Shown piece by piece: positions 3,451-63,752 of a stretch of 64,000 bases of DNA. The DNA is taken from the NCBI GenBank assembly GCA_964234715.1, contig OZ174276.1. One strand, given 5' to 3'. The notes beneath the pieces were generated by a model, which saw only the letters and a program-made list of their open reading frames with translations, did not search any database and was not told where the DNA came from. This stretch comes from Podarcis melisellensis (Eukaryota). Position 1 is the stretch's first letter, and every line of letters starts with the position of its first letter. A program made the position numbers and the translations under genes.

Positions 3451-3494
3451 CACTGTTACGTGTTATATTTCACTATTACATGTTATATTTCACC
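3451..3494. repeat. 20-bp tandem repeat, about 2.2 copies
   Basis: cactgttacgtgttatattt cactattacatgttatattt cacc. Confidence 0.7.
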
Positions 3495-4904: not shown

Positions 4905-5702
4905 TACTTCCAGATGACCTGGAAACCTGAAGTTGTGTGTGCAGCATATACAGTCCATGACATCCTGATCTTGAATAATGTACCAAATTTTCAGGTGTCT
5001 GAAAATGGGACATATTGTCAATAGTCAAAACTCAAAACATGACAGGTAACCTTTGTATTGTTTTAGAGTTTATAGAGCTGGGGTTATTTTAAGTTGTTAA
5101 TCAATGCTGTACTTTTACTTTTATACTTCATTATTTTTACATTGTACACTCTATTGTTAGGTACTATCTTGTGGTAGGGGAAAATGGTCTATATATATTT
5201 GAAATAATAGCTGGCACTCCTAACACAAAGTAAAGGAAGCTATGAAATGTTACTGAACACAGTCTGGAAAAGTAATAGTAGCACATAAGCTTACCTGCCA
5301 AGTGTGTATGGCTAAAGCCCAAGGGAAACAAGCTCATTTCTCTGTACTGTTAACTTGTGCTTAACTTCCTTTCTTTGAGTAGTTTAGAATTGAGGCATTT
5401 CTCTCTTTGTACAGTCATGTTTAATGTTTGTTATTCTGTATAATTGGTCACGTGTGTTATAGAAGGGGGTCCTCATGACTATGGCTGGTTTTAGTTTTAT
5501 CCTATTTATTTTAAACTCAGCTGTTGTTTAAAAGGATTGTTTATTTTGTGCAAGATCGTTCATAAGTATGTTTGCAAAAAAGAAAAATGAAGTCAAGCCA
5601 CACTAGACTTGCTGGGTTGTAGCAGTTTTCCTCTCATAGCTAGAATCAGCAGCTTGGGTTTAGATTTTTTATCTTGTATTTTTATGCTGTGATAATTAAA
5701 TA

Positions 5703-5935
5703 CAGTGGTATATTGGTTTAAGAACAGCCCTGTTTAAGAACTATTCAGTTTACGAACTCTGCAAAACCAGAAGTAGTGTCCCGGTTTGCGAACTTTACCT
5801 CGGTCTAAGAACAGAATAGTGGAAGGGCACCAGCGGCAGGAGGCCTCATTAGGGAAAGCATGCCTCGGTTTAAGAATGGTTTCAGTTTAAGAATGGACCT
5901 GGAACGGATTAAGTTTGTAAACCGAGGTACTACAG
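5703..5935. mobile_element. Related, more diverged Tc1/mariner MITE
   Basis: TA-CAGTGGTA...GAGGTACTACAG-TA. Shares 'ggtttaagaa', 'gcaggaggcc.cattag' and 'ggacctggaacggattaag' blocks with 4680-4904. Confidence 0.7.
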
Positions 5936-8900
5936 TAAATATTTTCCATGTGTAAGCAAGTTGAGGTTGAGCCGAAACGAAGTAGGGGAAGTTTTTTTCT
6001 CCTGTCACCTAGGGCTAGATGGGCAGTCAAACATCTGAAGGTATCACATGGTGACAATGGTGGTTTTAGGGTATATTCCATTAACATGTTGTTTCCTATG
6101 TAGTTACTTCACTTGCTGAATGTACGCTTCCATCCAGTTACCTGTCTTCTTCCTATTTCCACCCCCACCCCTTTAGCTGCATTGGGATATTTGAGCTGAG
6201 CCTTAGCATTGACCTGAATAAAGGAAAGAGCCTGTTACATTAATTATATAGTCCCCGAGGAGAATGAATGCAGCAGGATTTTCAAAACGACGCTCTCATC
6301 ATTTTAACTGTGCGTTTACCTTCCCACATGACAGGGTGATGGCAGGAAATGGCTTGTGTTATGTTCTCAACAGATTTGCCGCAGAATCTCAGGGACATCC
6401 AAGCAGGGCTTCAGCCCTACTCTTTATCTATTTATCCGGATAGTTAAAATGCTCAGTGTACCATTTCTAAATCACAGGAGGATGAAAGAAAGAACAGAAG
6501 CCCCGTATCAAAAGGCATAAGCCTATACATATCCATAAATAAACATGACAGGCATCCAGTCCACTGCTGCCTTTTCAGTATGAGAAAACTGAAAGAAGTA
6601 TGGCAAGCTCTGCGTGCAGGGGAAACAGATACAAACAGATTGTAAGGGAGGACAAACAGGAGGAGAGTATCTGTACTGGATCAACATCCTACAGTCCAGT
6701 GTGTTTCCTTGTGAGGCCCACCATATCTTATGAGGTGGATGTGGCTTCCCTTCTGTAGTTCCATATGCCTCACACATCACAGTCAAAGAGCTGGCTTATT
6801 GGTTAAAGTGAACATATAAACACACTGTCCCATTGCCTTTTCACTGCTTCCTTAGGATTGCCAGCTCACAATGCTGCAGTAAAGACAGAATCCGCAGGTG
6901 GAAAATTATCCATCTAACTATTAAAGGGATTGGAGAATCCTCAGGGACTAGACTCAGAAAAAATAGGCTACCTAACTCCCCCGTCCATAGTCCCACAATC
7001 CATTTTCTCAGGCCTCTCTTTTTTTCCTCAGGTTCATGTAGTACTCTCTATTAATTGCACAATTTTCCTGTGGTTAAAATGCACGAGGGTCCAAAGTGAG
7101 CCTTGCAGAATGCCATGCCATGTGCAGAGCAACATTCTGCCAGAACCATCCTCTGGCCCATCAGGCAAGAGTAGAACTACTGGAAGCTAGTCCAGGAGGA
7201 TTATGTGGTCATTGGTACTGAATACCTCTGTACGTGGTGTGCCAGAAGGTGTCATATGAAGTCAGATATGTATGAGAGAAATATATGGTTGTAAAATGAA
7301 ATCTTGAGGTTGGAAAGGGCATGTTAATATTAATGTTGGGGACACAAACATCATTATGTTTCTCCACCTCTCCTATAGCCCATCATCCAGCAGACTTAAA
7401 AAGCCCTCATTATAGAGAATCATCCTCTTGGTAAAATACAGTTTAGCTTCTGCATTTCAGAGCTAAAAATAAAAGAACAAGAGAAGAATTTCAGCTGTTA
7501 TGCATGCAGCAGATGCACTGCACACAAGGGAGCCATTATGAGTAGAATAAGTGAATGCAATTAACAGCGCTGAAGTGACTAAGCATTCCATATAAAATCA
7601 CTATGGATCAAAGTGAAGCTACTTGTGCATTTGAAATGGCATCTTTAGCAACAGGAAACACAATACCAAGTAATTTTTCTTAATTTTAGGACATGGAGGG
7701 GGTTCCCTCCCCCATGTATTATTCTGAAAAATTATGCCTTGTCTACTACATGTTTTCAGAGAAAGACATTGTATAGAACCTCGTGATTTTAAGCTGTTTC
7801 TGTTGAGGGACAAGATGCTGATTTCATATTAATATTATCTTTTTGATCACTGCGGTGTTTCAGTTAGCTTGTTGAGATACATCTTGAACTTGACCTGGTG
7901 AAAACATTAAGCAAACATTTGGGTCCCCAACTAATATCCAAACAGTAACTTTTGCAAATGCATATATATTGGATGGAGATAAAGCAGTTGTGAAATGCTG
8001 CCTTTCTCCATTACAAAGAGAAATCACAGCCTGCCAAACACATGGACATTGATAGCACCTTCCACAGAAGCAACCACTGTGATGTAGACAAAAAGAACCC
8101 AGAAACTGAGAGGCTGCAATGTTCCCCATAGATGGCTATTTGAAAGCCCTTTTGCTTCTATCTGCAAATAGCCATCCTTTATGTTGTGTATTGAGTCAAA
8201 GGATTTTATATCTGTATTATTATTGTCTATCTATCAAAAGTGGGGAAAGGGTAGTCAGTTCAGTGTAGTGTAGTTTCCAGGCAGCTTCTTTGGGAGGTTT
8301 CCCTGTTGGGGTTTTTCATACTGCTGTGGATATGCTGTAACTGGATGCAGAGCTGATCTGAATCTTAAACTTGGTTGTGGTGGTACGGGCAGAGTTGGAG
8401 GAGGTTGTGGGAAGTATTCATTGGCTCTCAGTTGAGTTTGATGTGTTTTAACACGCACCGTCTCTTTTGTTGTCATAATGCCATGCTAACAACACTGCTC
8501 ATCTTTGGCTCTTCCATTGGAAATACACCAGTGTAATATTATGATGTATCTCTGCTGTTTAGCTGATGTCAGGTTTTACCTGTATGAAATGCCTAACATC
8601 TGGTGTCATGGGGCACTTCCCCAAACCCTAAATTCCCCAGCTTGCATAAATTGAACACAGAGGAGAAAGCTGATAATTACTTTGTTGTAGTGTTGTTGTT
8701 TTTTAGCTGCAAAGCATTCCACAGGCAAACATATTTTTATATTTTCACAACTTGCTGACACGTCACTTTTTGGTACACTTTAATTAGACCAAATCATGCA
8801 AAATTTACACCAATAGAACTGAGTCTTTGCATTCCTATTCCACCCATCCTCAGCAGAGAAGATCATCACAATGTAGGCTTTATTATGTTTTCATCTCATA

Positions 8901-15287: not shown

Positions 15288-18200
15288 GAATCCAGTAAGC
15301 CTTATCCACCAGACCTGTCTCGTAGCCCTCAAAGCTTGAGTGACACTGGCTACTCATCTGATGGCATATCCAGTTCCCAGAGTGAGATCACGGGCTTAGT
15401 GCAGCAAGAAGGAGAACAACTAAATGAAACCGGAATTGTAGAGCCGAGCCCTCCAAGTCCTTCGGAACTCACTAAGCTGGAAAGCAGTATGCGGCCCCTC
15501 CTGGAGTCCAAGGGGCTGGCTCAGGAGCCAACAGACAGAGGTAAAACATACCACGAATTACGAGAGGAACAGAGGGAAAGGCAGAGGCCACGGTCCCTTT
15601 CTATCACCCCGGAAGCCTTTGATTCTGATGAGGAGCTAGAAGATATAATGGAAGAAGATGAAGACTCTCTAGAATGGGAGAACCAGAAGGAGCAGAGGGA
15701 CAGCATGGAATCCTCAGATGACTTCGGCAGCAAGCTACGCCACGACTACGTGGAGGACAGCAGCGAAGGAGAGTTCTCCATCGTACCAACAAGGCAGAAA
15801 AGCAAAGAACCTGCAATGACTGACGAAGAGTTCATGAGAAGGCAGCTCCTGGAGATGAGCGCAGAGGAAGATAACCTGGAGGAGGAGGAAGAATACGATC
15901 GTGTAAAATATAGTGTTGCAAAAAACGGGCACAAGCCTGACTCGGAGAAAAGCAGGGAGGCCGCCTTATCCAAGAGGCGCCTGCCTCACAGCTCTGGCAG
16001 CATATATGAGGAGGAAAGAAAAGAGCTGGAAAGTACTGAGGGGGAAGACATGGCTGCATCTCAGGGAGGTTTGCGGCGTTTCAAAACCATTGAGTTAAAC
16101 AGCACTAACAACTATGGCAGAGACATGGAGATCAGCCAAGAGGCAGACATCAGCCTGGACAGAGAACCTGAACTGGAGATGGAAAGCCTGACGGGATCCC
16201 CAGAAGACAGGTCAAGAGGCGAATATTCTTCCACCTTGCCAGCAACAACACCCAGTTACACATCAGGAACCTCCCCCACCTCCATCTCTTCCCTGGAGGA
16301 GGACAGCGATAGCAGCCCTAGTCGCAGGCAGAGGCTGGAGGAGGTCAAGCAGCAGAGGAAAGCCCGGCATCGCTCCCACGGACCTCTGCTGCCAACCATA
16401 GAAGATTCCTCCGAGGAAGAAGAGCTGCGGGAGGAAGAGGAGCTCTTGCGAGAACAGGAAAAAATGCGAGAGGTAGAACAGCAGCGCATCCGAAGCACGG
16501 CTCGGAAAACAAAGAGAGATAAAGAAGAGCTGAGGGCACAGAGGAGGAGGGAAAGGTCTAAAACGCCACCCAGCAATCTGTCTCCCATTGAAGATGCATC
16601 ACCCACCGAGGAACTGCGTCAGGCTGCAGAGATGGAGGAACTGCACAGATCTTCCTGTTCGGAATATTCTCCTTCCATTGACTCCGAGGCAGAGGGGTTT
16701 GATGTCATTGCCTCCAAGCTGTACAAGTCTGGCAGTGAGTACAACCTCCCAACATTTATGTCCCTCTACTCTCCAACAGAAAAAACTGCTGGCTCTGGTT
16801 ACCCCTCCAACAAGCCCCTGAAAAGTGCGGAAGAAGCTTATGAAGAGATGATGAGGAAGGCAGAAATGTTTCAAAAGCAGCAACCATCCCAGCAAAGCGT
16901 TTCCTACAGCAACACCTTCCAGCAAGTAGGCTATCGTGGTTCAGAAGGCCAAAACAATTTCGAATACCAATACATAGACGACTACAGCTATGACGGCCGG
17001 AATTTAGACTCCTCTCAAGCAGACTATCAGAACGAACTTTCCAAATCTGGGGCAGTTTATGAAGAAATCCTTCAGACGTCACAGAATATCTCCAGGATGC
17101 ATCAATCCTCTTCTCTGGATTTGACCCTTGAACAGGACGTAAAGAAGAAAGGGAGAGAAGATGCTTATCAAGAAAAGCAGTTTCTGAATGCAGAGAGTGC
17201 TTATGAAAGTGGCCCACTCACTCCTGGGACAAGCCCAACCCAGTTGTCTGCTCCTGTCTCCTTTTCCTCCACTGAAAGCAGCGCAGGCAGAATAATCCCT
17301 GATGTTCGAGTCACTCAACATTTCGCAAAGGAGAGTCAGGAGCAGCCAAAGCTTCATAGCTCACCCACAGCACCTAGCTCAGTTTCAAAGAGCGTAACAA
17401 CGCCCTACACGTATGCTAAAGGAACTAGCACCGTCACCACTGTTGTTTCCAGTCCTGCAAGTGCACCACGAATCTACAGCTCTCCGACTTCTCTGAGTGG
17501 CTCAGATGCACCATCCGTGTCCACTACTAGCCGAAGTTATACTCAAACAAAAGTAACAGCAAGCTATGGTTGTCAAACAGAAAATATTTCCAGGGTCAGG
17601 AGCGTTGCAGAGATTAGTGGGCCATCAGCAAGAGAGAAACTCCAAAGCATGACTGACAAGTCCACTGGACCCATGTCAACACCTAAAACATATTCCTACT
17701 TCAAAAGCTCAAGCCCACCGCTTTCCCCTTCTTCTCCTACTCAGAGCCCCACTCATTCTGTTCCTAGAGCTGGGGTACCACCCAGTTCAGGGATGGGGGT
17801 TAAATCAACTGCAGAGTTTTCCACCCAAACCCATAGCCCGGTTCTCGCCTACGATGCCCCCACGACTACCGCTATGTCAACCTCTTCTCCAATGGTAGCT
17901 CAAGGAACACAAACTCCCTACCGATCGGGTTCCCCTCGCCTTGCTCGGCAACAATCATCACAAGAATCTCCCTTTATGGTCATCACATTAGCAGCAGATG
18001 CAGCCATTCAGACCAAGCCGATTGGCGTAAGTTCCTCCATTTCACCAGCCTCCTCTCCAACTCGGCAAGGCCGCCAGCATAGCTACAGTCAGACAGTAAT
18101 CCATGCAGCGCAACTCCAACAAGAGCAGCTGCAGTCCACTTACACGAAGACCCAATCAGCTCTCGAAAGAGCCTCTGCTCCTAGTGCTGCAATGCAGAAA

Positions 18201-21200
18201 GTGCAAACAACTGCTGCTGACAGCATGCCTGGTGTGTATAGCTGGGGAACGCTGCCTGCAGAGAACATTTCTTTGTGTCGAATATCATCAATACCTGGGA
18301 CATCAAGAGTAGAACCTGGACCCAGACCAGTTGGTAGTAATATTGTGGACCTGCGGACTGCAATAAAGTCAGCTCCAATCATTATAACAGACCAAGGGAT
18401 GGATCTCACATCCCTAGCTACAGAGAGCAGAAAATACTGCCTCACTATGGACCAGTCACCGAGTCGGCAGTCCAGCACCATCCAACCCTTAATTATCAAC
18501 CTTAATGCCCAGGAACAGCCCCATGCTATCATAAGCACAGCCACCACAGTCAGCATCACTGTTGCATCTTCCATGCTTGTGTCTCAGCCAAAACATCCTG
18601 CGGTCTATGGAGACCCTTTCCAGAACAGAGTGGACTTTGGTCAAGGGACGGGGAGTCCTGTCTGCTTGACACACATTAAGCAGGTAGAACAAGCAGTTCA
18701 GACTGGTACTTTCAGAGGAGTTGGTAGCGGCACTGGAATTTCTGCTTCTGCGGGCCGTCCAGAAGCCGCAGGTCCACAGCAAGCGAAATTTGCAAGATAC
18801 AATTTGCCCAACCAGATGACATCCTTGATGAAAAAAGATGCCCTGATCAGTCAGACCAACAATGCACAGAATATTGTGAGTGCCATTCCCAGACCGTTTC
18901 CTCAGGACCAAAGTTCAGAGGTGTATAGAGGGATCCCAGTGGAACTGAAAACCCAGACACCCCCAGTCACCATTGGGACTAAGAAATCCCAGGTTATGAT
19001 GGTGCAGATGGATGATATTGCAGCAGGCCCTGTCACCAAACTTATCAAAGAGGAACCTCCTCCCAATGCCTTGGATCTCACAGGGATGAAGCCTGAAAGT
19101 CAAATAGCATGCTGTGACGTAGTGTACAAATTTCCCTTTGGAGGCAGCTGCACTGGGGCTTTTAACCCTTCTTCCAAGGTGCCAGAGAAAAATGTTGGGG
19201 ATGCAGCAAGCGCTGACAAACTTAGTGGCCAGTACTATGGCGGCAGAGAACAGGAAGTGGCAGAGGCATATCCTTATCGAGAACAAGCAGCACCAGGGCC
19301 TAATCCGTACGAGGAGCACAGATTCTACCATCATGGCCTGTTTGGGAGACTGTATTCCTCAATGTCAGATACAAACCTTTCTGAAATGGGCTTGAACTAT
19401 TACCCAGTTAAGGGAGGGCAGCCCTTCAACACTCCTGCTGGGGATTCCGCTGTGGATCTGACAACCATGAAACCTCCGTACAGCCACAGCTTCACCGAGG
19501 GAGGCTACATGGGGCACGGAATGCAGTACGGCTCTTTCTCTGACCTCAGGCAGCCCAGTGACTTGCTGAGCCATTCCTACCCAATGCGGAGATATAGCTC
19601 GGCCTCCAATATCTACTCTGACTACAGGTATTCGCTGAGAGGGGACCTGGCAAATTTCCAGGAAGCCAGCCTGGCTCATTATAGCGCCACAACAGCTCGC
19701 GAAATCAGCCGAATGTGTGCAGCACTCAACTCTATGGACCAGTACGGTGGTCGGCATACAAACAGCTCAGATCTTCTCCAATATGGACAGTATGGGCCAG
19801 GAGGGGGCGGAAGCATCTCGGCCCAGCAGGGTGCCATGAAATCAAACATGATGTACAAGCCAAATTTCCCAGAGTCTGGCCAAGGCTATGGAAACCTAGC
19901 CCAGTACAACCTCTCCAGATTTGGAGCTGTCAGACAGGGACACCCTTCCACAGCCACCGTACGAGCTGCTGATGGCATGATTTATTCAACCATCAACACA
20001 CCAATCGCATCAACTCTCCCCATCACTACCCAGCCAGCTTCTGTGCTGCGCCCCATGCTCCGAGGCCTATATAGACCCTATGCCCCAGGCAGTATCACAG
20101 CGGTCCCTCTGGCCAGCTTGACCAGAGTGCCTCTAGTTGCTCCCAGGATCCCCCTTGCATCCCAAGGTCTGTATCGTTATCCAGTGCCCAGCAGACTCCC
20201 AGCGGCTCCCACATCTTCAGTAATGGAAACACCAATGTATTTGGGGAAGCCTGTTAGCACCACTGCAGCCAGCACTGCTGCCAGTAGCGTAAGCCCAGCA
20301 CCAGTTTCCAAGCCCTCGGCTCCGACTGCTGTCCCCTTGCAAAGGCCTGAGCAGAAAGGCAGAGAGGAGGCTGCTGCAGTGACTTCTGGGGTGCAGAGTA
20401 CTGTCAGGGATGCCAGCCAAGGACAGCAGCAGCAACAGCAGCAGCAGCAGCCACCGCCACCACCGCCTCCACCACCACCACCACCACCACCAACCCAGAA
20501 ACAAGCCGAAGCTACCCAGCCCAGCATTGCCAGCAAAGCAGCCACAGAAAGGGAAGAAAAGGAGAAGGAGGAAGAGAGGCAGAGGAAGCAGCAGGAGCAC
20601 ATCCTCCAGATTGAAAGGGAGAGAGTCGAGCTGGAGAAACTGAGGCAGATGAGGCTGCATGAGGAGCTGGAGCGGGAGCGAGTGGAGTTGCAGAGGCACA
20701 GAGAGAAGGAGCAGCTGCTGATGCACAGGGAGATCCAGGAGCTGCAGTCCATAAAGCACCAGGTCCTGCAACAGCAGCAGGAGGAGCGCCAAGTCCAGTT
20801 TGTGCTGCAGCGGGAGCAGCTGGCCCAGCAGCGCTTGCAGCTGGAGCAGATCCAGCAATTGCAGCAGCAGCTGCAGCACCAACTGGAGGAGCAGAAGAGG
20901 CAGAAGAGCAGCTTCCCTCCCGTCTGTGACCCTTCGGGGAGGCTCCCTCCCCAGGCCGCGTCAGAGATCACCATCGAAATGCAGCGGACCCTTGCTCAAA
21001 ATGGGCAATACTGGCCACCCATGAACCAAGCATTTATAGCTACTGCGGCCCCAGGACAAGACGGGCAAGGGCAGCCTCGCTACCCTGGACTCCAGAGGCC
21101 TCTCACCAACTCAGCCTCTGAAATGTCCCTGCAGACGGAAGACCAGTGGGAAGCCGGTCGGGGGATCAAGAAGAGGAACTCCATGCCGCGTCTCCGGGAT

Positions 21201-22145
21201 GCTTATGACAAGGAGCCAGGCCATGAGCCATATGTTGCCGTGAAGAAGATCACAGACAGCAGTGTGCAGACGGATGAGGAAGATGGGGAGGAACGTTTCT
21301 ATGCATCCCGCCGCCGGCGGACCCGGCGCAGCACCGACTGCAGTGTGCAGACGGACGAGGAAGACAACGGCGAGTGGGAGCAGCCCGTGCGGCGCCGGCG
21401 CTCCCGCTTTTCGCGGCACTCAGACTCCAACGCAGAAAGCAAGCCAGACTCTTCGGCCAAAGGCACTGCTAGCATAGCGATCCAGACCATCAGTGACTGC
21501 TCTGTTCAAACCGAACCTGACCAGCTCCACCGAGTGTCCCCTTCCATCCACATCACCACCCCTGACCCCAAGGTGGAGATTGTGAAATACATCTCTGCCC
21601 CCGAGAAGACCCAGCGAGGAGAGAGCCTGGCTTGCCAGACGGAGCCGGAAGCGCAGCCACAGCCAGGCATCGTGATCCCCCAGCTCACTGTGCCTACGAC
21701 GATTACGCCTTACTCCTCCAACATCCAGATCGTAAGCACAGGCCCCCTGGATCCCCATTCGGTCCGACAGCAGGCCTTGGGGAAGAAGAAGCCCGACCCA
21801 CTTGAAATTGGCTACCAGTCCCACCTGCCGACAGATTCCTTGTCTCAGCTGGTGTCCCGTCAGCCTCCCAAGTCCCCCCAAGTACTCTACTCCCCAGTCT
21901 CGCCCCTGTCCCCACATCGGCTGCTAGAGTCTTCCTTCACAACCAGCGAGAGGCTCAACAAGGCCCACGTGACCCCGCAGAAGCACTTCACAGCCGACAC
22001 CACCCAGCGCCAGCAGACCCTACCTCGCCCCATCAAAACCATGCAGCGGTCCTTATCTGACCCCAAGCCCATCAGCCCAACATCAGAGGAGTCTGCAAAA
22101 GACAGGTTCTCCTTGTATCAGCACGCGTTGCTTCCTGGTAGCCAG
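15288..22145 (+). CDS. BSN: Bassoon giant coding exon 5 (6858 bp, 2286 codons; coiled coils CC1 and CC2, LC8- and CtBP-type motifs)
   Basis: Acceptor ttttgtag|GAA and donor CAG|gtaaga, phase 0/0. Bassoon hallmarks DLSRSPQSLSDTGYSSDGISSSQSEITG, GGLRRFKTIELN, RHRSHGPLLPTIEDSSEEEELREEEELLREQE, KKKPDPLEIGYQ. Confidence 0.98.
20424..20492 (+). repeat. Coding (CAG/CAA)9-(CCN)14 trinucleotide tract, giving Q9P14
   Basis: Read directly from the sequence inside BSN exon 5. Confidence 0.95.
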
Positions 22146-22540
22146 GTAAGATTGCCGCTTGTCTGATAAGTAAGAGAAGTCTGATGATATTTCTGCTTTT
22201 CTTTTTAAAGGCCCCCGCTTATCACGTAATCACTGTATGCAGCAGGAATGAAGGAGAGCTGCTTTAAAGTCCCTGTGAAGATAAGACACAACAGGCTTAT
22301 TGGTCACAGCAGGTCCCTCACTCTCCATGTAAAGCTTGTTTTGCAACTTTCTTCACAGACATGCAAGTCAAATGCATAATGCTCTTAATCATGCTCCTCT
22401 CCTTCAAGCAGAGTGCCCCCACTTTTAAACCCAAAAATTGCTAAAATAAAATAAAACCATGAAGACACTGAAAATAATTATAAAATTACTTTAAGGATTG
22501 GTGAGGTAGTGGACATTGACCAGTAAGTACCCACTGCAGC

Positions 22541-33732: not shown

Positions 33733-35887
33733 ATTTCAACCCTGCAGTCAAACACCCTCATTCGGAAAGTGAAACGGACCCTGCCTAGCCCCCCACCGGA
33801 AGAAGCTCATCTCCCCCTGGCCAGCCAAGCTCACTCACAGATGTACATGCCGGGCCTCATGCAGAAGGGAGTGGCAGGGCCAGCCATTCAGGTGACGAAG
33901 GCCAGCCTCCTCAAAGACATTGACCGCGACTTGAAGCTAGTGGAGCACGAGTCCACAAAGCTGCGGAAGAAACAGGCTGAGCTTGATGAAGAAGAAAAGG
34001 AGATTGATGCCAAACTGAAGTACTTGGAACTGGGGATTACGCAGAGAAAAGAGTCTTTGCTGAAGGACAGGAACGTCCGTGACTATCCCTACCTGAGATG
34101 CTTGGGGGAAAACAGGGATTATATGTCTGACAGCGAGCTCAACAACCTACGACTCTCTGGCTATGAGAGTCTGACGAGGCCTAGTACTGCCCCTTCCAAT
34201 CAGTACGCTGACTTTTCCAGTGCACAGTACACATCAGCCTCCTCTTACACCCCATATCAGTACTCCTCAGGACAAGCTGCCCCACCAGCCCCAGCCACAT
34301 TCCAGCAAGCAAGGTTTCAGCCTCCACACTACCCCTCAGCAAGCAATGTCCCTGCGCAGAACGGATTCCAAGCAAGCCAGATGCCGGCCTACCCTTCCCA
34401 AACGACATACCAGAGTCACAGCTTTACTCCAAGCACCGGGTATCAGTCTGAACAGGTTCTGCAAAGTCACCAAGGCTTCCGGCCACCTTACCAAGCACAG
34501 ACCACGTATCCCAGTCAGACACCTCTGCAGCCAGCACAGAGCGCTCTTTTCCAGACCCACGCGGACACACACACCACCTCCCAGAAACCGCGACAGACAT
34601 CGCTAGCTGACCTCGAGCAGAAAATGCCCACTAATTATGAAGTAATAGGCAACCCCACTGTGGTCATCTCAGCCGCAACTCCAGAAGTGACGTACAGCAC
34701 CACAACTGTGACCAGCAGCTACGACCAGTACAAGCCGCCAGAAGGAAGGCTGGTGGACAGGAGCGGCGTAGCCCAAAGTCCCTCGACCAGCTATTCCTCT
34801 GACTCCCTCTACACCAACCTGGAGCAGAACATTCCTCGGAACTATGTAATGATTGATGACATCAGTGAACTAACCAAAGAGAGCACCTCAGCAGAGGGCC
34901 AAAAAGGAGATTCGCAGTTGCAGAGCAGCAATGGGCGATATATGAAAGAAAAGAGTGACTTCACAGACACAGATGTCTCCAGCAGGCCTTGTTGCTACCC
35001 AAAGGGAGAAGAGTCAGAGGAGGACATGTATGATCACCACGGCCCTGACCATCGTGGGAGAGGCTACCATAGGGGCCCAGAGAGCAATGGGAGGATGTCG
35101 GGTAGCTCCGGCTCCTACTACTATGGGGACAGTGATTACAGGCACTCCACTCGCCCAGACAAGCCTGGGTCCACCATGGGAGTGCAGAAGCACTCTTCCA
35201 AAAACTTGGCCCCAGCTGTCATCTCTTCTAAACGCAGCAAGCATCGGAAACAAGGTATGGAGCAGAAGATCTCAAAATTCTCCCCTATAGAAGAAGCGAG
35301 AGATGTGGAATCAGACCTGGCCTCTTACCCAGCAACCACGTCAGTCAGCAGCAGCAGTGTGGCATCCAGAGCAAAGAAGATGCAAGACGACATCACATAC
35401 GGCCTCAAAAAGAATGTATATGAACAGCAGAAGTACTATGGTGGGTCTGCCAGGGATACGATGGAAGAAGATGACAGGGCATACAGTGGCGGACGATCAA
35501 GATCGTCTGGTTATGTGTCGGAGAGAATGTCGAGCCGCGAGATCAGGAGCAGGTCCTACGAGAGAGAGAGCATGGAGAGGCCTCAGAGAGGCAGTTCCAA
35601 ACCTTCTTCCCTTAGCATGAGTCAAAGTCGCGGGCGACCTCCAATTCGCACACAAACCTCAGAAGAAGAGAGCCCCATCAGTCCTTTGGGGAAGTCCATG
35701 GGCGTATCGCGGTCCTCGGGTGGGCCTCTCCCTCAGTCTGCTGGGGACAGCTGCTCTCAGTTCTGCTCCAGTCACTCATTGCCTGATGTACAAGAACATA
35801 TCAAAGATGTGCCAAGAACCCACTCTTACAAGCATGAGGAAGGTTACATCATGGATGATTCACACTGTGTTGTTTCAGACAGTGAAG
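33733..35887 (+). CDS. BSN: Bassoon coding exon 6 (CC3 coiled coil and C-terminal region)
   Basis: Acceptor ttctag|ATT and donor GAA G|gtaatg, phase 0/1. Encodes RKVKRTLPSPPPEE, LKLVEHESTKLRKKQAELDEEEKEIDAKLKYLELGI, GMEQKISKFSPIEEA, HCVVSDSE. Confidence 0.97.
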
Positions 35888-36260
35888 GTAATGGCTACCT
35901 GTGGTAACTTAACCCCAGAGCATGCCCAAGCGGGTCATATTTGCAAGGACAATACCACAGCCTCCGTTTCCTTGCCAGGTGCCTTTCTCCCGCATTTTGC
36001 TTTGTTTTGGTGGTTCTGTGTTAGCATGCTGCACTCTGCATGTCCTACTGGTGCTCTGCTCACTGCTTGTTCAGTGTGATACTGTGCTATGATTCCTCTT
36101 TATCTATAGATATCTATTTCCCAAGCGGCTACTGTGGCATATCCTGTGTGCATGCAATCGGTTCCTTGCTTTCTTTTAATCCATTGCATGGCTTCATCCT
36201 GGGGTACATTCCCAACTGTGGATGAGGGGATTGACTGTGATTTGTTTTTGGTTTCTGAAG

Positions 36261-37099
36261 CCTATCACTTGGGTCAGGAGGAGACAGACTGGTTTGATAA
36301 GCCGAGGGAACCTCGTTCGGAGAGGATGAGGCATTATGGTGGCCACTCCTCATCCTCCCAAAGGAGGGGTCCAGTTAAGCACACCTATCACGACTATGAC
36401 GAGCCCCCGGATGAAGACATGTGGCATCACGATGACTACTCTCACCCGCGACACTCCTCTTCCAAAGAACACAGGCACCATGGAGACTACGGGAGGCATT
36501 CGTCCTCCTCTCGGCACTCCACCGATGACCTGCCAAAGAGGTCATCCAGGCAACATCCCAGAGATGCTGGCCGCCACGAGTCACGCGGACATGGGCAGCC
36601 CTCTTCCCAGAAGAAGGCTCAGCAGGCCGATATAAGAGCGCAGCCAGGTTATCCTTCCAGCTCCTCAGAGTACCCCCAGCAGTCTCGGCAGCCGTCAGGC
36701 TACCATCATACCTCAGAGTCCCAAAAATCGCAGAGGCAGGTGCAACATGGGCCGCCATCTCAGCAGCCAAAATCGGAGCCTCTTTCGCACCAACAGCAGC
36801 AGCAAGCGAGGCAGCAGCAAGTTGGGCAGCAGCAGCAGCAGCAGCCGTCATCCAGGCAGCAGCAGCCGTCGAGCAGACAGCAGCAGCAGCAGCAGCAAGC
36901 AGCTCCCTCGCAACAACCTTCTCAGCAACAGCAACAGCAAGCTAGGGTGCAGCAGCAGCAGCAGCAGCAGCCACCGCCAGCAGGAACCCAAGCCCAGCCC
37001 TCCTCACGGCCAGCCCAACAACAGCCTGGCCAAGCCCAGCCAGCAGGCAAACCCCAATCTGCCCTCCAAGCACAACCTGGCACTCACCCAGCGGGACCA
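36261..37099 (+). CDS. BSN: Bassoon coding exon 7 (His-rich and polyQ region)
   Basis: Acceptor tttctgaag|CC restores DSE-AYHLGQEETDWFDKPR. Donor CCA|gtaagt. Phase 1/0. Confidence 0.95.
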
Positions 37100-37410
37100 G
37101 TAAGTACCTACGTGCCTTTGTTCGGGGTCAGTTATACAGTAGGTCCCTCAGAGCTGACGACAGCTTGTTTTGCCCCACGTCAGGTGAGAGGGCTGGGCTA
37201 AGCGATGGCCTGTTCTGTAGTACAGGAGTCGCGCTGGGATTGCCTCACCTTAGAATGTCAAAGCAAGGAAATGTGCATTTGTGGACTGACTAGGTCGCTG
37301 TGGAGAATGAAGTCTTCCCAGCAGAGTAGTGGTTCATGGAACTAACAATAGGCTGCAGTAAGTTATAGAGGGGGCAGTTCGGACACAGACAAAGAAGAGG
37401 GGAGGGGAGA

Positions 37411-51100: not shown

Positions 51101-53039
51101 CGAGGTTTTCTCCTGACCCTGAGATATTGGCTGGCTGGATTAGCAGGGAAGCTGCTCCCATAGACCTTAAGCCATTATAAACAAGCTGGAAAGGGTTGGT
51201 GCCTGCCTCCGACAGACACTGCCTCCTGCTAGGAGCCCCATCCATTCACATTTTCAAGCGGCTGCCTGCAGACCCAGGAGGTGCACAGCTTTCCTGTGGG
51301 AGTCACATGGCATGTGCTATTCCCCGTTCAAGTACTGGCGCAGGAACATTTAGTCCCACGCAGCCAGAGTTGGCAAGAGCTTGTGCAAGGCACCCCTTGT
51401 TTGCCAAGAGAGGTGTCTGCATTGATTCCATGGAGTCATGAAAGCGACGTGTGCGCCCTTCTGAGATGAAAGTACAGTGCATGAAGTGACAGCCAAAACC
51501 AAGCAAATCACTCTTCCTTTCCAAAGCTGCAGGTGCTGGGCACCCAAGCGGGTTAAGATGGATGACTAGATCTGTTGCAAAGGCAAGAAGAGAGGAACTG
51601 CTCATGAACAATCTTCCATAGTTGAATTATAAATACTTAACGGGGGGGGGGGGCTGTGAGGAATTATGGGATGCAGGAGTATCCATAGTTCAAGTGCCAT
51701 ACACACAAGAAGCAACGGTCTCACTCTACAAACTTTTGGACCTATTCCATTTTCTATAACCCCTCCTTCGCTCCGCTGACTGCCAGAAGCCTGCTTTTTT
51801 CTCAGAGGACACCCTTCTGTCACCTTCCACTTCATGTGGTAAAATCAGCTTATCATAGCACCACAAATAACACAGCGGACCACAGAGCAGCTAGGGCCTT
51901 CCCTCTCCCCCTTGACTGCTGTCTAGAAGAATCACTAAGAACAGGATCCAGATGCTCAGTCCTTGGTAGGGCACTGGAGAACCCAGTGACCTTGCCCTCT
52001 TCCCCTTTATGAAAACAGCAGAGCTAAGCAATGCTTCACCATCTGCTAGGCATCACAAGAACAGACACAGCTGAAACAGGCACAACTTTCATTGAGCAAC
52101 ATCAGTGATGGCAAAGGAGCATCCAAGCTGTTTTTGTTTAAAAAAAACAACTCTCTCACAGAAACAATTGGAAATGCTGAAGCAGCCCAGGGATTCATAC
52201 CAGCACACAGTGCAGAAAACAGTGGTTGCAAGACAAACTGCAGCTCCATAATTGCTAAAACACAACCTAAGGGTGAAGGAATTACAAGTGACTTTCACAT
52301 GCAATGGACACAAATTGGAAGAGGCTTTGATAATTGGCTTCCCACCCTGCCTGTGGAGCTGCTAAAATTGTAAATAAGATCCAAAAACAGTTATACTGGC
52401 ACGAGACTTGGTGTCCAATTCTATTATTCCTGAATGCCTAGTGTGAGTCCCACACTGAATGGCATGTGGGTCTTTACTCAGCTGGACTTTACTCAAAGAT
52501 GCCTGAATGTCACTGTGACTGAACTGGAGGTATCAACCACACCAAACCTATGTCACTACTTTTAAAAACAAACCTGTTTTCATTTCCATTAGGGCTGTTT
52601 TTTTTTTTAAGTACATTCACAATTCAAGCTAGTTGCAGCAGAATCGCTGAACTTCATTTGACTTTTGCAAAGATAAAATTCAGATTGGAAGTAGTAGGTG
52701 GTTGAACAACCCTCATAAAAATGTAGGCTTTTCGTTCCAAGTTCCTGGCAGCCAGATGATTGCAGAAACGATTTTAAATTTGCTGCCTCTCCCCGCCGCC
52801 GCCACCTACACAGAAAATATGAGTCAAATTCATAATAAACACAAGTACGACATTTATTTAGGAAAGTAAAGAAACAATTTAGGATGAGAGGAGAATAAGG
52901 AGAAGTATGGGGCTAACGTTGTGGGGTGGCCTATTTTAAGCCACTGTCCTTGAAACCCCGCCACGAGGATCTTCGCCTGCAACACATTTTTAAGTGATTG
53001 CAAATTCACATTAGAGTGGGGGAAAGGGTCGGTTTAGAA

Positions 53040-53620
53040 AGAAAAGAGCACCAACGGGCCGGGTAGTCAGAGACGTCCATGCCAAACCGAGGCTTTGCCT
53101 TGCAACACAGGAAGTCCTGTCTCCAGATAAAAGGAATGACCAGGCTTCCCACTGAGCAGCGCGCGCTGATTTTGACGGGCAGGTCCACAGCCAATGAAAA
53201 TAGGCGGGACCGAAAAGGCACAGCCCCACCCACCCTGGAGGTACCGAGCGGAAGGTGACCGAACTTCGAACCTCCGGGACTGGGCGCAGCGGCAAAGGAG
53301 ATGGAACCACCGGTGAGAAACCCGGGGGGAGGGGGGTTCCCCGGGTCCGCCCCCCCCAGAGGATGCGGGGGGGGGGGCTGCGCCCGCGTGAAGCAGCTCC
53401 CGCTGCTCGGTGAGCAGACCTTCCCAGAATGCTCCGCGGGCGGGTGTGTTTGTGTGTTGGGGCTCCCAGCATCCCCTTCGGAGGGGCACGAACGTGTGAA
53501 TGGACTCCCTTCTACTGCTGCCACGCTAGCTGTCCGCATAGGATTGTTCCTGGGGGCGGGATACGGGCCGCGCTCCAAGGCTGCTGGCTCCCTCTCTCTC
53601 CCCCAGCCCCCGCTTTTCAG
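53040..53620 (+). promoter_or_regulatory. CpG island and TATA-less promoter of APEH
   Basis: Dense CpG around the first coding exon. ETS-like CAGGAAGT 53108-53115, CCAAT 53191-53195, GGCGGGA about 53203-53209. Confidence 0.8.
53301..53312 (+). CDS. APEH: APEH exon 1 coding part (MEPP)
   Basis: Strong Kozak context gagATGG and donor CCG|gtgaga. Four-codon first exon, as recalled for mammalian APEH (MERQ). Phase 0 fits exon 2. Confidence 0.8.
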
Positions 53621-55897
53621 AGCTGCGAGATGAGCCCAACTGCAACATGTGAAACAAGTCTTCTCCACAGGCACACCCGGCCAATATGGAGATGTAATTG
53701 GGGGTGGGTGGCAACTCTTCTTTATATCTCCAGTCAAAAGAAAAAAAGTTCCTTTCGCAGTACTACAGCATCCCTCTACTCTTCCCCCTCCAAAAAATAA
53801 AAATAAAATCACGTGCACACAAGGTGGGAACCGTCACAGCTCTGAAACATTTGTATTATAGCGTGTTGACCTGGCATGGTTTAAGAACCCTGAGCGCATG
53901 GGTGACTGGATGTGGCACGAATTTAGGTTGCTACAGGGGGAAAGTCTTAAGGTGGTGGCGGAGGGGGGGTGGTTATCTTCATTCTTTGTCACCACACTGT
54001 TGTTCCCATATATCAAGTGGATTATTAGGGTAAGGTTCCTCACTTGCTTCGGAGAAGGGAGGACTGAGTGTATGAAATAGCTGTTGTTGCTGAGAGAATG
54101 GGACTTTGAACTCTTGCACTAAAGGAGACCTGTTGCTTTAGGGCAGGAGTGGCTGACCTGTGGCTCTTGGACACAGTGTGGCAGGTAGATTGGGTGGAGG
54201 TGTCCCTCTGCTCAGCTCTGCTGGCCTCCACCTGTACAGTGGTATCATTCTGCCAGTATGGACCCCCCTGTTCTGCCTGCTGAGCCTGCAAGTGTATGCA
54301 AGTGCCACTGGCAGGATCCCCGTCAGCAGCGCCCCACACGAAGCCCCAAAATTGGGTGACGTGAAGGCAGGGAAGGGCTGAACCAGCCTGAGATCCATTG
54401 CATTGCAAGTCAACCTCACTGCTGATGGTACTGGACCCAGTCTCCATCCAACTGCTGCACCAGCTCCAGGCATCCCCACTCCTTCCACCCTGGCCAGCCA
54501 AAACAGCATGGGTGTAGCCAAGGGGGGCAGCTGCCCCCCTATTCAATAAAATCCAGCAAGAATGCATAGCAAACTGAGGTTATGCCCTCCCTAACAAAAG
54601 TCCTGCCCCCCTAACAAAAATCCTGACTGCGCCCATGGCAGCCATGGCAATCTGATAAACATCACTTCTGTCTGTTCAGGGTTTGAATTTTGCAACCTAA
54701 ATGATGTTGGACTCTCAACCCCTACCATCTCTGACCACTGGTCATGTTAGCTGAGGTGGAGTCCAACAACATCTGGAGGGCCACAGCTTCCCTATCCTTG
54801 GTTTAGAAAAAAAAAACACAAAGGGGAAGGGGGAGCTGGGGGAGCAGGAAGGATATAGGAAGAGTTCTTCCTGGACACCTTTCCAAACAAAATTCTGTAG
54901 TTGTCAGTGGCCCAAGGTTATTCCCTGATGGCCCAAATGAAATGTTAATGAGCAAGGGAGGCAGGGAATGTTTTTACCCTCCTCCTATTTAGCTTCAATG
55001 ACAATTGATGTCTCTTTTTTGCATGGAAGTTGCTGATTCGGGATCCTCACATGCTTGTGAACTTTTCAGATAGAAGGAGTGATAACTGGTCTTTAATTAC
55101 CATGTGATTGCCTGCCCTGCCTTTCCAAAGTAAATAGTGTGCCAAATGTAGCTATTGAAACTTTGTCCTTCCACAAACCATGTTTCAATTGCTGCGGGCT
55201 TAGAGTGTCACACATTAACTTGGGCTGCTGGGCTGATTAATGTATTGGTAGTTGAAAGAGCACCTTTGCTGCAGCACCTGCAACTTGGTACAGAACAGAC
55301 TTTCTGGTTTTGTCTGTTTCAAAAACAAGTAGACAAGAAACATCCAGCTCTTGTCTGTTTTGGATTGCAAACTTGGGACAAAACAAGTCTTGTGTGTCAC
55401 CTTAAAGATTTAACCAAGGACCCAAAATGTTCCATGAGAAAGGACTTATAAGTAATATAGATTGTGTATTGGTTGTGGTGGGGAATGAAAAGGGAAAACT
55501 GAGCAGGAGACAGGGAGAAACATACACCCTATATCAGTGTGGCAACTTAATTTGCTCAGAAGCAGGTGATGAGCTTCTCTCTCCTATCTACAGCAGTGAT
55601 GTGATTTTTCCTGTATGCACATCAGTAAATCTGCTTAGGTAAGAAAAGAAGTTAGAAGCAGCTGCTACAGCCAATCTTCCTCTAACCTGCAGAAGGTGCA
55701 AAGCCAGGACTGCTTTGTTTCCAGCTATCTGTGTGCTCTCACCTTCACCTCACCAAAGTGGCTCCACCTTCCAGCTTCTCACCCAGAAGCAGTTGTTACT
55801 AGCCATGAGCAAAGGGTTAATTGCAAGCATGTTTGTGTTGCTTTTACCTGGAGTTGGTCCCAACTAATTATGCTGCTGCTTTCTTTTTATTGTGCAG

Positions 55898-56642: not shown

Positions 56643-56959
56643 TATTTTTTTGCAGCAACAAATCAATGTAAAATGGGGGGCAATGGAATAAAATCTGTGG
56701 GAGTCAAACCAAGATGAAATCATAACTTTAAACATGGGGAAATAAAGTTATTTGACTGGTGTTGGAAATACATTAAGGTAGGTTGACAGGCAAGTCTCTT
56801 GTGTGGGGAGGCTCCTCTTGTCTGCGCCTGGTCTTGCCTGAAATAGTTGGGGGAAGAGGAGGATGGGACAGTGATGTTGGGATTTTTTTGTGGTAGAGGA
56901 AGATTGGTTCTTTCTGTGGTAGGCTGGACAGAAACTGAGTTCTCTCCCTCCCTTTACAG

Positions 56960-57086
56960 AGTGGTCTCAGCGAGACTTGGAAAGAGCTGAAAATATAAAA
57001 TTCTGCCATCAGTACCTCATCTTCCATGACAGCCACTCCATTGTGTACTCAAGCCCCTCTGGCAATTGCACGGAAATCAAGGGAGA
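56960..57086 (+). CDS. APEH: APEH exon 3
   Basis: ctttacag|EWSQRDLERAENIKFCHQYLIFHDSHSIVYSSPSGNCTEIKG GA|gtaagt. Confidence 0.95.
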
Positions 57087-57557
57087 GTAAGTCTCTTGTT
57101 TGTTGTGTTTCACCACGCTTTCTGCAGAAACAGCAGATCACTACCCAAAGCCTTGCGCTGAAGGGGGTCTCCCAAGGATCAGCACAGCCTTGAACCTCCA
57201 GTGCCAGGGATACATGTTCTGCACCAAAACAATCCAAACCCTTTAATGAGATCAGACTGCTTTACTTTCAAAATTATTTGAGAGTCCATAATTTTGGACC
57301 GAAGGGGCCTCTAAGGCAGCTGACTGAAAATCAGAACACTAAAACAATGGTTAAGCGCCCTAATCTGCAATATCTAGCACTGTCAGAAGCCACAGGGAAA
57401 GACAAAACTGCAAACCTGCCCAGCAGCATATACTTACTCAGCAGGAACTTCTGGAAAATCCCAGTTACAGATAGGTAGCCGTGTTGGTCTGCCATAGTCA
57501 AAACAAAACAAAATTTCCTTCCAGTAGCACCTTAAAGACCAACTAAGTTAGTTCTTG

Positions 57558-57595
57558 ATATGAGCTTTCGTGTGCATGCACACTTCTTCAGATAC
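57558..57595 (-). ncRNA. Minimal hammerhead ribozyme motif, antisense copy
   Basis: Reverse complement reads GUAU CUGAAGA A GUGUG CAUG CACAC GAAA GC UC AUAU. Confidence 0.65.
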
Positions 57596-57600
57596 ACTGT

Positions 57601-57638
57601 GTATCTGAAGAAGTGTGCATGCACACGAAAGCTCATAC
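57601..57638 (+). ncRNA. Minimal type-I hammerhead ribozyme motif (Penelope-type)
   Basis: GUAU CUGAAGA A GUGUG-CAUG-CACAC GAAA GC UC AUAC. Conserved core, stem I GUAU/AUAC, stem II GUGUG/CACAC, stem III reduced to palindromic AGCU. Confidence 0.75.
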
Positions 57639-58238
57639 CAAGAACTAACTTAGTTGGTCTTTAAGGTGCTACTGGAAGGGGAAAAAAATTTGTTTTGGAA
57701 AATCCCAGTTTTTACTGCTTACTAAAGATAAGCAGGCCTTGGTTGGCAGGGGTGTTCCACAGCTGTGGCACCACACTTAAAAAGGCTCTCTCTTGTGTCA
57801 TCCTGCCCTGGGGAAACGTGAGGTGAGGTAGTTCTTCTAATACATTATATGTATTGTCATACGTTTACTTTATTACCAAATGACAATGGAGATGATCCAC
57901 ACGACCCATCCGTCCCTTGCAATATCCTAGCTAGGTGTGCTTCCAAAGCCTTTTGTGTGTGGTGTTTGTTTGTTACCCTTTGCAGCGGCAGGACCCCTTC
58001 CTTAGTGTCAGCACTGGCTGTTTCTCCCAGGACAGAGGGGCTGCTCCCTTCAGGCATAGCCAGCATGGCCTGTGATCTGAACTAATGGGAAGTGGGGAGC
58101 CCAACAACACCTGGAGGGCCACATGTCCCCTGCTTGTCCTGGAAGGATGGGCACATCCTTTCTGGTACCTTCTTTGTACTGGCCTGTGCCTGACCGAAGC
58201 CATATTTCCTAGGCTGACCATCCTGTTTTCCTTCTTAG

Positions 58239-58329
58239 GCTGCTCAGTCGGGACTCTCCCAGTGGAACACAGAAAGCCGTTCTACGAAAGACTAGCAACA
58301 CCAAAGGCGAAGAGAAACAGTTCCTAGAG
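58239..58329 (+). CDS. APEH: APEH exon 4
   Basis: ttcttag|G LLSRDSPSGTQKAVLRKTSNTKGEEKQFLE|gtatat. Confidence 0.94.
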
Positions 58330-58766: not shown

Positions 58767-59030
58767 GTGAGATTTCCTTGCAGCTCTGTTTCCATTTGTA
58801 AGAGACAAGAGAAGAGGATAGCTAGGCCCCAACATTCATCCTTTCCTTGCAGCTCGGGAGTGCTGGTGGTGGTAGGGTGTTCTCCGATATCCCTGATATG
58901 CACTGATAAGGGAAGTCATTTTTGTCCTGTTTGAAAAGGGGACCTGGGAAACCTAGGAATGCTTCTGGTCATTGCATTTTTGATTGAGGTCAGTCAGTGA
59001 AATCTATTGTCATATTGTTCCCTGCCCCAG

Positions 59031-59191
59031 ACCAATTTGGCTGCTTGGCCTGGTCACACTCCGAGACGCACCTTCTCTACGTGGCGGAGAAGAAGCGCCC
59101 CAAGGCTGAGTCGTTCTTTAAGCCAAAAGCCCCTGAGCTGAGTAGCGAAGAGGAGCTGGCCAAGACAGAGCGACGAGACAAAGCCATTAAG
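59031..59191 (+). CDS. APEH: APEH exon 6
   Basis: gccccag|DQFGCLAWSHSETHLLYVAEKKRPKAESFF...DKAIK|gtagaa. Confidence 0.96.
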
Positions 59192-59598
59192 GTAGAATGA
59201 ACTTCTGCTTTGCCTTGTGTCCTGCGAGCCAGTATTTCAGTTTCTCTTCATCATCACCATATGCCATTTTTTTTCCATATTCAAAGCAGCTCTATTCATA
59301 AGGCGATGCACTACCAATTACACTTATACCTGAAATGCAGTAAAGCTAATGCTTGCATCTTGAACAGTTGGCTCTGAGGGAGCAGTTGCCTCCAAAGGTG
59401 ATGTCCCTGCAGTGGAACTGCGGAGTTTGTAAGCAAATGTGTGCGGGGGCTTCTCACTCTTCAGGAAGTGGGAAGCGCTTGACTGATGCCAAGTTGAAAA
59501 CCAGTGATGCGGGCCCTGGCAATCTCCCAGGCAGGTGAGACTCCCTTTGCTGTCACTCAAGCTGCCTCTGCATCAGGATCTCTCTTTGCTTTTCCTAG

Positions 59599-59736
59599 GG
59601 AGAGCAGTTTGTGTTCTACGAAGACTGGGGGGAGACCCTGGTGGCTAAAAGCACCCCTGTGCTGTGTGTATTGGACATTGAGAGCAACAACGTTTCGGTC
59701 CTGGAGAGCGTTCCAGAGCACATCTCCCCTGGGCAG
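59599..59736 (+). CDS. APEH: APEH exon 7
   Basis: ttcctag|GEQFVFYEDWGETLVAKSTPVLCVLDIESNNVSVLESVPEHISPGQ|gtcagt. Confidence 0.96.
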
Positions 59737-60235
59737 GTCAGTATAGGATAAACTGAGGGAGAAGGTTGGCACCCAGTTAGATAAGGGTATTTTTATTTAT
59801 TTTAAATACTTGCAATCTTCCTTCTAGCTCCAAGGAGGGTCTCTAAAAGCAACTTACAGAAGATTTCCACATGTTTGGTATCTGGAACAGAAACAATGTG
59901 GAGTCATCCTCGGTGTTGCCTGTTACCCCCACCCCCAAAAGTGTTATTTGCCAACTCCAATACTATAATAGCTGTTCCAAAATGGCTAGGATATAGTGGG
60001 AAGGACTCTGTGCTTGCCGGCCAAGATGCTTCCTTCCTGGAAAGATAATTTCAAAATTATCTTCCAAGACAAGAGCCAGGGAGTGTTCCCCATCCATTTA
60101 ATTCCAGGTTACCATGGTATATATTAGTTGGGTCTGCTCTTGTCTTCCAACCTGTCTTAACCCCGCATGTTGGAGATGTGCTAGAGTCACCCGCCTGCCT
60201 CTCCACACCTGACATGGCATTCCCTTCTCCCCCAG

Positions 60236-62667: not shown

Positions 62668-62733
62668 TCTATATGTGTTGGAAGCCGCCCAGGGTGGCTG
62701 GAGCAACCCAGCCAGTGGAGCATAAATAATAAA

Positions 62734-62776
<43 letters not shown>

Positions 62777-63611: not shown

Positions 63612-63655
<44 letters not shown>
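63612..63655. repeat. (GT)22 microsatellite
   Basis: Direct read. Confidence 0.98.
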
Positions 63656-63656
<1 letters not shown>

Positions 63657-63752
63657 TCCCCATTGATGAATTGCAGGACAGCTTGTTGTGTGAGAAGGTG
63701 CTTTCTGGAAGCAACTGAGAGTAGATCTCTCTCATGCTGTCTTTTCCTCTAG

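Follow-up and report, generated by a model that had tools for sequence, protein, structure and literature searches.

A probable young Penelope-like insertion with a minimal hammerhead motif on each strand in an intron of an APEH-like gene of Podarcis melisellensis

How does a near-perfect palindrome that carries a hammerhead ribozyme motif on each of its strands come to lie in an intron of a lizard gene, and what is the ribozyme expected to do there? The palindrome occupies positions 57517-57679 of the window that we analysed, i.e., the whole stretch of 64,000 nucleotides from Podarcis melisellensis (contig OZ174276.1 of assembly GCA_964234715.1), in which there is not a single N. Here, we report that the locus quite probably arose when the terminal part of a Penelope-like element (PLE), or of a non-autonomous derivative using the PLE machinery, was recently inserted into a ~1.15-kb intron of an APEH-like gene.

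Results

The host gene was recognized from the translations of its exons, which were searched singly. An APEH-like coding exon on the + strand (approximately 56950-57086, translated as ...TEWSQRDLERAENIKF...EIKGE) is followed by a GTAAGT donor, and the next APEH-like coding exon on the same strand (approximately 58238-58329) reads LLSRDSPSGTQKAVLRKTSNTKGEEKQFLE; the host intron lies between them at ~57087-58237. Later exons are colinear with the Pfam domain APEH_N, scoring 34.6 bits at 59611-59748 against a cut-off of 23.1 and matching weakly at 58997-59197. The original prediction had placed the palindrome in intron 3 of APEH: the flanking + strand exons, by their translations and by the Pfam matches, agree with an intron of an APEH-like gene, and for the number, "intron 3" is plausible, at least two coding exons preceding the insertion-bearing intron.

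Several other features of the window were noted in passing. Three long + strand open frames (15288-22163, 33733-35904, and 36110-37198; 2,292, 724, and 363 codons, respectively) are probably exons of Bassoon; BSN-APEH synteny occurs in other vertebrates, and the window would share it if these frames are indeed Bassoon. The region 53000-54500, upstream of the first APEH-like coding exon, is G+C-rich with long spurious open reading frames (ORFs) on both strands, and is probably the APEH promoter CpG island together with the first exon. Two microsatellites are found at ~62690-62740 (an AAT/ATT-type run, appearing as poly-Asn or poly-Ile in ORFs) and at ~63640-63700 (a CA/GT run, appearing as (CV)n or (HT)n in ORFs).

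The palindrome is built of two inverted arms of 81 nt each (57517-57597 and 57599-57679), which are 99% complementary according to both the sequence and a repeat finder. Its centre is the single nucleotide T57598, which sits within an ACAC/GTGT repeat, and the sole mismatch sets A57558 opposite C57638. On both sides stands a perfect 15-nt direct repeat, TGGAAAATCCCAGTT (57452-57466 and 57696-57710), which stretches to 18 nt at the cost of one mismatch. The 81-bp arms with one mismatch, the 1-nt centre, and the 15-bp direct repeat are all as the original prediction had described them.

Logan contigs of four runs, which are built from 31-letter words, were aligned to the host intron. We found a precise empty site in three of the four runs, where 57451 is joined straight to 57696 (X1, record 4, 258 nt; X5, record 16, 5,692 nt; X9, record 24, 674 nt). 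A 229-bp insert together with one copy of the 15-bp repeat makes up the 244 bp that are skipped, and because the empty-site contigs skip exactly this length, the direct repeat is taken as a target-site duplication (TSD) and the insert as 57467-57695. Three other genomes or individuals lack the insertion, which is therefore young or polymorphic. The filled allele was seen in none of the four contig runs, and the palindrome itself is known only from the assembly. In X1, the unique flank 57402-57440 is covered solely by the empty-site contig, and positions 57409 and 57410 show non-window letters only.

X1 has two haplotypes over 57275-57386 and 57827-58034, one of which equals the window (records 2 and 6; 0 differences) and one of which is divergent (records 3 and 5; 4 and 14 differences); beside the insertion site, the divergent, empty haplotype is the only one seen. 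The same intron holds a second repeated stretch, 58065-58142, with a word depth of 1,500-7,400 vs ~100 on its flanks (X1 and X9), which is probably a fragment of another repeat family. Compared with the window, X5 has small deletions at 58071-58084, and both X5 and X9 (organisms C and D) have 13 additional nucleotides, GTCTGAGCTGCCT, after 58155.

The insert can be described as two unequal copies of one unit placed head-to-head. The left arm in its full extent (57467-57597) is a 131-nt copy whose sense is the - strand, beginning at the centre with the 5' end of the family and extending to the family's outer terminus, and the right arm (57599-57695) is a 97-nt copy whose sense is the + strand. 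The left arm exceeds the right by 37 nt at its outer end (57467-57503), an extension resembling the PLE "tail"; the right arm lacks it and stops at the equivalent of ~57504. Apart from this, the arms differ by the one mismatch and by a 5-nt indel in an A/T-rich tract (57680-57684). The outer ends of the arms lie ~61 and ~95 nt past the predicted hammerhead cut. By inspection of the sequence the insert has neither a poly(A) nor a LINE-type 3' tail, and the 64-kb window has no further copies beyond the two arms. Likewise, no tandem direct repeat of the hammerhead unit is found within 800 bp or in the window, the inverted pair being the only arrangement present. The locus does not have the layout of a non-LTR retrozyme.

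The family to which the insert belongs was followed in the contigs. Over 57441-57674, the word depth in X1 is 1.4-4.4 million vs ~80-107 on the flanks, a ~10^4-fold difference that is not to be read as a copy number, and 17,154 contigs of X1 were aligned to the stretch; the element family is very abundant. Contigs that follow the left arm past 57599 carry a conserved 30-nt extension in all four runs, with an agreement of 0.64-0.87, and a similar number of contigs stop at ~57601 against unrelated AT-rich flanks. In the sense orientation, the extension reads ...TATAAGGGTCTGGTGACTTCTGTTT and then CAGTGTATC, and in these longer copies a TATA-like box, TATAAG, stands ~29 nt upstream of the equivalent of 57601. 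At the other end, many contigs have loose ends at ~57463 with unrelated flanks beyond, and this position is accordingly read as the canonical outer terminus of the family. Among the family joints listed, 12 of the 15 have one side at 57593-57606 and a variable other side. Please note that family-wide statements draw on contigs with short joint sides (20-28 nt). With this in mind, the joints are suggestive of a canonical 5' end close to G57601 (mirror 57595), to which a variably truncated partner is often joined in inverted orientation. Both arms at our locus read as 5'-ended copies of a longer unit, and the palindrome is near-perfect here because both partners are full length to the common 5' end.

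For the ribozyme itself, we scanned the window with a descriptor of the minimal hammerhead (min-HHR) that asks for a helix I no shorter than 3 bp, CUGANGA with or without one more nucleotide, a helix II no shorter than 4 bp, GAAA, a palindromic 15.2-16.2 pair, and U-H. The descriptor has exactly two matches in the 64 kb, + 57601-57638 and - 57595-57558, and none in 300 shuffles; a looser hammerhead pattern has two matches in the window vs 0.01 expected. Both motifs consist of a 4-bp helix I, CUGAAGA, an extra A, a 5-bp helix II with a 4-nt loop, GAAA, GC, U, and C17. On the + strand (57601-57638), helix I is formed by 57601-57604 and 57635-57638, followed by CUGAAGA (57605-57611), the extra A (57612), helix II with its loop (57613-57626), GAAA (57627-57630), G15.2-C16.2 (57631-57632), U16.1 (57633), and C17 (57634), with the predicted cut after 57634. 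The - strand motif (57558-57595) is identical save that its helix I is closed by G-U (AUAU for AUAC), and its predicted cut falls after the mirror C at 57562. The conserved core (C3 U4 G5 A6 N7 G8 A9, G12 A13 A14, A15.1-U16.1, H17) is complete on both strands (CUGAAGA...GAAA-GC-UC). The traits of the min-HHR class are also present: an extra nucleotide, A57612, between 9 and 10.1; a G10.1-C11.1 pair, G57613-C57626; a long helix II; and a palindromic 15.2-16.2 pair, G57631-C57632, inside AGCU and without loop 3. Helices I and II both appear in the MFE fold of the isolated arm, and among the variants listed for the four runs, the contig variant table has no variant at 10% or more inside the motif. 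A full core with stems I and II and a stem III reduced to AGCU, on both strands, had been claimed for this locus, and both the descriptor scan and the class traits confirm it; the cleavage position that had been predicted, C57634, coincides with C17 of the descriptor match.

The Rfam hammerhead models, to which the original prediction had pointed as a check, gave a different outcome. There is no match at gathering score over the 64-kb window, and none appears even at E<=10 when 361 nt or the single arm is searched. We do not consider this miss decisive because the min-HHR class is without helix III, which the Rfam models include; the class was in fact defined as lacking helix III and had been missed by earlier descriptors (Cervera & de la Pena 2014, PMC4209133).

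One side observation concerns helix II. Together with its loop it reads GUGUGCAUGCACAC (57613-57626; also 57570-57583), which is a perfect 14-nt palindrome, and two sense arms cofold through it at -33 kcal/mol vs 2 x -8 kcal/mol as monomers. On these calculated energies, the helix II palindrome could offer a second, domain-swapped dimerisation route besides helix III.

The core pattern was also scanned in metagenomes, where it gave 116 loci that are mostly chance matches in microbial contigs. No copy of this insert's family was found among these 116 loci, the sole blastn match being 34 nt at 85% in L076. Three loci resemble genuine min-HHRs (L094:2477, L036:992, and L023:662), having the extra nucleotide together with 5-6 bp in helix II and 4-6 bp in helix I. 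L042 (5847-6431, 6946) has, as a PLE would, an ORF on the strand of the motif and ~500 nt upstream of it, with a weak GIY-YIG match (20.2 bits, under the cut-off).

Folding calculations set the hairpin and the hammerhead against each other. As RNA, the whole insert forms a single hairpin of -158.5 kcal/mol (z = -24), and as DNA it reaches -104 kcal/mol (z = -27). The isolated hammerhead arm has -8 kcal/mol, no better than shuffles, and with z = +0.9 the isolated sense arm is not unusually structured and thus gives no hint of a further conserved fold. The AGCU duplex for a dimeric helix III amounts to ~-2.5 kcal/mol. By these energies, the 81-bp duplex (-158 kcal/mol) would far outcompete the isolated hammerhead fold (-8 kcal/mol).

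Discussion

We consider first whether the insertion belongs to the PLEs. PLE insertions are described as strongly 5'-truncated, often with an inverted 5'-truncated copy adjoining the 5' end (Craig et al. 2021, PMC8557442), and often with a 30-40-bp tail at one end only (PMC8557442, PMC11167929). At our locus, both arms start at the centre and run outward, i.e., an inverted 5'-truncated copy stands at the 5' end; the one-sided extension has 37 nt, close to the length described for the tail; and a retrotransposition footprint is left in the form of the 15-bp TSD and the precise empty site in three runs. An RT or GIY-YIG ORF is found neither at the locus nor elsewhere in the 64-kb window, and at the locus this is expected because of the extreme 5' truncation. 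Poseidon_Ac (PAc), from Anolis carolinensis (PMC11167929), was the only PLE consensus compared, and by term search and by eye it shares no sequence homology with the insert; its hammerhead, CUGAGGA-U-helix II-GAAA-CG-UC, has the same architecture, and the architecture alone is common to the two, which does not speak for their belonging to one family. The original prediction had linked the palindrome to Penelope-like retroelements, and this identity is supported by the hammerhead class traits, the head-to-head pair, the tail, and the TSD with its empty site; sequence shared with Poseidon_Ac and an Rfam hammerhead match are not among the evidence.

Other points of comparison go in the same direction, each with its differences. 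Like the PLE min-HHRs (Cervera & de la Pena 2014, PMC4209133), the motif has a type I layout, a full core, an extra nucleotide after A9, G10.1-C11.1, and a long helix II, with no helix III beyond the palindromic A-G-C-U, so that it would be expected to act only as a dimer; in contrast to them, it has no same-sense second copy nearby, its neighbour being its exact antisense, and its helix II with the loop forms a perfect palindrome. The insertion architecture of PLEs (PMC8557442, PMC11167929) is matched in the head-to-head copies, the one-end extension, the TSD, and the two alternative 3' end points past the hammerhead. Here, however, no ORF-bearing unit lies between the repeats, the insert being two terminal fragments only, and both fragments reach the common 5' end, giving a near-perfect palindrome.

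If the element is a PLE, a two-sided target-primed reverse transcription is a reasonably likely origin. The PAc protein cleaves and extends both target strands and is a predicted dimer; its reverse transcription begins at two internal positions downstream of the hammerhead, the tail being the sequence between them (PMC11167929). By the same route, the endonuclease of our element would nick both target strands 15 bp apart, and both nicked 3' ends would prime reverse transcription at two internal start sites of the kind typical of PLEs. The product would be two copies of a ~100-130-nt unit, head-to-head, each starting at the centre immediately 5' of the min-HHR and each running outward to one of two alternative 3' end points, 37 nt apart, with the pair flanked by the 15-bp TSD; where a full-length copy meets a full-length copy, a near-perfect palindrome would result.

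Could the palindromic interior instead be an assembly artefact, e.g., a fold-back chimeric read, over a real or unreal insertion? The filled allele is in none of the four runs, and inverted PLE structures are known to trouble assemblies (PMC8557442). However, a perfect 15-bp TSD bounds the insert and matches the single copy in the empty alleles, and head-to-head junctions of the element family are present in independent runs; because a fold-back artefact would not generate a TSD within the contig, we rate this explanation as very unlikely. The same element might also have produced the palindrome by snap-back, where one first-strand cDNA stops at the centre, folds back, and primes its own second strand, unequal resolution then leaving the one-sided tail. 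Such an event would go well with the almost exact symmetry of the arms and with a 1-nt centre inside the ACAC/GTGT repeat, but most of the family joints listed are not symmetric, the canonical 5' end forming one of their sides, PAc has been shown to prime on both strands (PMC11167929), and a proper TSD on both sides is easier via two staggered nicks. The 5-nt indel between the arms speaks against snap-back as well, although the indel and the mismatch, taken together, are neutral between the candidate mechanisms. We regard snap-back as unlikely.

It may also be asked whether the PLE machinery is needed at all, since a short unit with a huge copy number and no ORF could be a non-autonomous element of SINE-like or retrozyme-like type that moves with the help of a LINE or through rolling-circle or circular RNA, and reptiles are among the hosts of animal non-LTR retrozymes with hammerheads, whose mean consensus is 176 bp. 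We think this quite unlikely: the tandem direct repeat, which is the defining retrozyme layout, and a poly(A) or LINE-type 3' tail are both missing, the one-sided 37-nt tail with an inverted partner is a PLE signature (PMC8557442), and the retrozymes themselves have been argued to be PLE derivatives. Even less probable, to a degree that we hardly entertain it, is a reading in which the host has selected the hairpin as an RNA gene (a miRNA precursor) or in which APEH is acted on by a regulated ribozyme in its intron. The stability of the hairpin is very high, and several Rfam miRNA hairpin models align with it at similar scores, the best at 65.6 bits; but all of these matches are below the gathering scores (for the best, MIR1222, 65.6 vs 90), and the models come from unrelated plant and animal families, which makes them generic long-hairpin matches, and the insertion, missing from three related genomes or individuals, is not conserved. 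For a regulated ribozyme, moreover, there is no same-sense partner for dimeric cleavage. The Rfam miRNA annotation was accordingly rejected as a set of sub-threshold generic hairpin matches. A MITE or fold-back DNA transposon was rejected on separate grounds, namely that most family contigs are not palindromic and either pass the centre or end there on unrelated flanks, and that the TSD has 15 bp vs the short fixed-length TSD expected.

Returning to the PLE reading, the position of the canonical 5' end can be considered further. PLE pLTRs hold promoters (PMC6765202), and taken with the TATA-like box in the longer copies, we infer that the canonical 5' end may be a transcription start site. From there, a tentative and rather doubtful extension would be that such mini-insertions are run-off cDNAs of a ~100-130-nt RNA: its TATA-directed start would lie just 5' of the hammerhead, its ends would be set by two internal PLE RT start sites, and a dimeric protein would prime on both nicked strands, giving spacerless palindromes when both cDNAs are full length.

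What, then, is the ribozyme expected to do in the APEH-like intron? Any transcript of the locus would contain one hammerhead and its exact antisense. As the host gene lies on the + strand, the antisense arm would be transcribed first in the pre-mRNA, and the hammerhead would be locked in the 81-bp duplex. There would also be no same-sense partner in cis for the dimeric helix III that the min-HHR class requires. Because the motif would be locked in the duplex and has no such partner, no self-cleavage is expected, and the ribozyme is predicted to be inactive at this site. Single min-HHRs have shown no cleavage and dimers low cleavage only (PMC4209133), the cleavage of min-HHR dimers being attributed to Lunse et al., as cited in PMC6765202; for PAc, reads ending at the hammerhead cut site were not found and the motif is dispensable in vitro (PMC11167929). 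The practical product would be a long intronic dsRNA hairpin made from the insertion-bearing allele. The original prediction had spoken of a self-silenced ribozyme, and this reading is sound on the order of transcription and on the calculated duplex energies, both of which favour the lock-up; it adds nothing beyond what would be a near-automatic consequence of the structure. Processing of the hairpin by ADAR, Dicer, or Drosha and cruciform extrusion of the DNA are reasonable expectations from the predicted folds.

Two known systems help to place the locus. The non-LTR retrozymes (Cervera & de la Pena 2020, PMC7229834; Li et al. 2026, bioRxiv 10.64898/2026.07.22.740005) are, as here, short, non-coding, hammerhead-bearing, and of high copy number; reptiles have them, and an origin from PLE pLTRs has been argued for them. 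They differ in having tandem direct repeats able to yield circular RNA, whereas the present insert is an inverted pair with no tandem copy. The other system is that of intronic inverted-repeat transposon pairs, e.g., inverted Alu pairs, which are sources of long dsRNA. By analogy, an intronic near-perfect duplex, of ~81 bp here, would form in the pre-mRNA; in contrast to inverted Alu pairs, a single insertion event gives both arms, with no spacer between them.

The locus is another instance of a known element type and reveals no new kind of ribozyme or regulation. For the host gene, it is an ordinary intronic transposon insertion, special only in the spacerless 81-bp pre-mRNA duplex that would arise from one event, and APEH splicing, A-to-I editing, and small RNAs could be compared directly between its filled and empty alleles. 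For transposon biology, it is a clean, datable miniature of two PLE signatures, the inverted partner and the one-sided tail, and it agrees with recent in vitro work in which a lizard PLE was found to prime on both strands, using two internal sites (PMC11167929). If the run-off cDNA reading is true, polymorphic perfect dsRNA hairpins of 80 bp and more would be scattered through host introns; they would provide an allelic series made by nature, on which the effects of ADAR, Dicer, and splicing could be studied and in which the hammerhead would serve the element and not the host.
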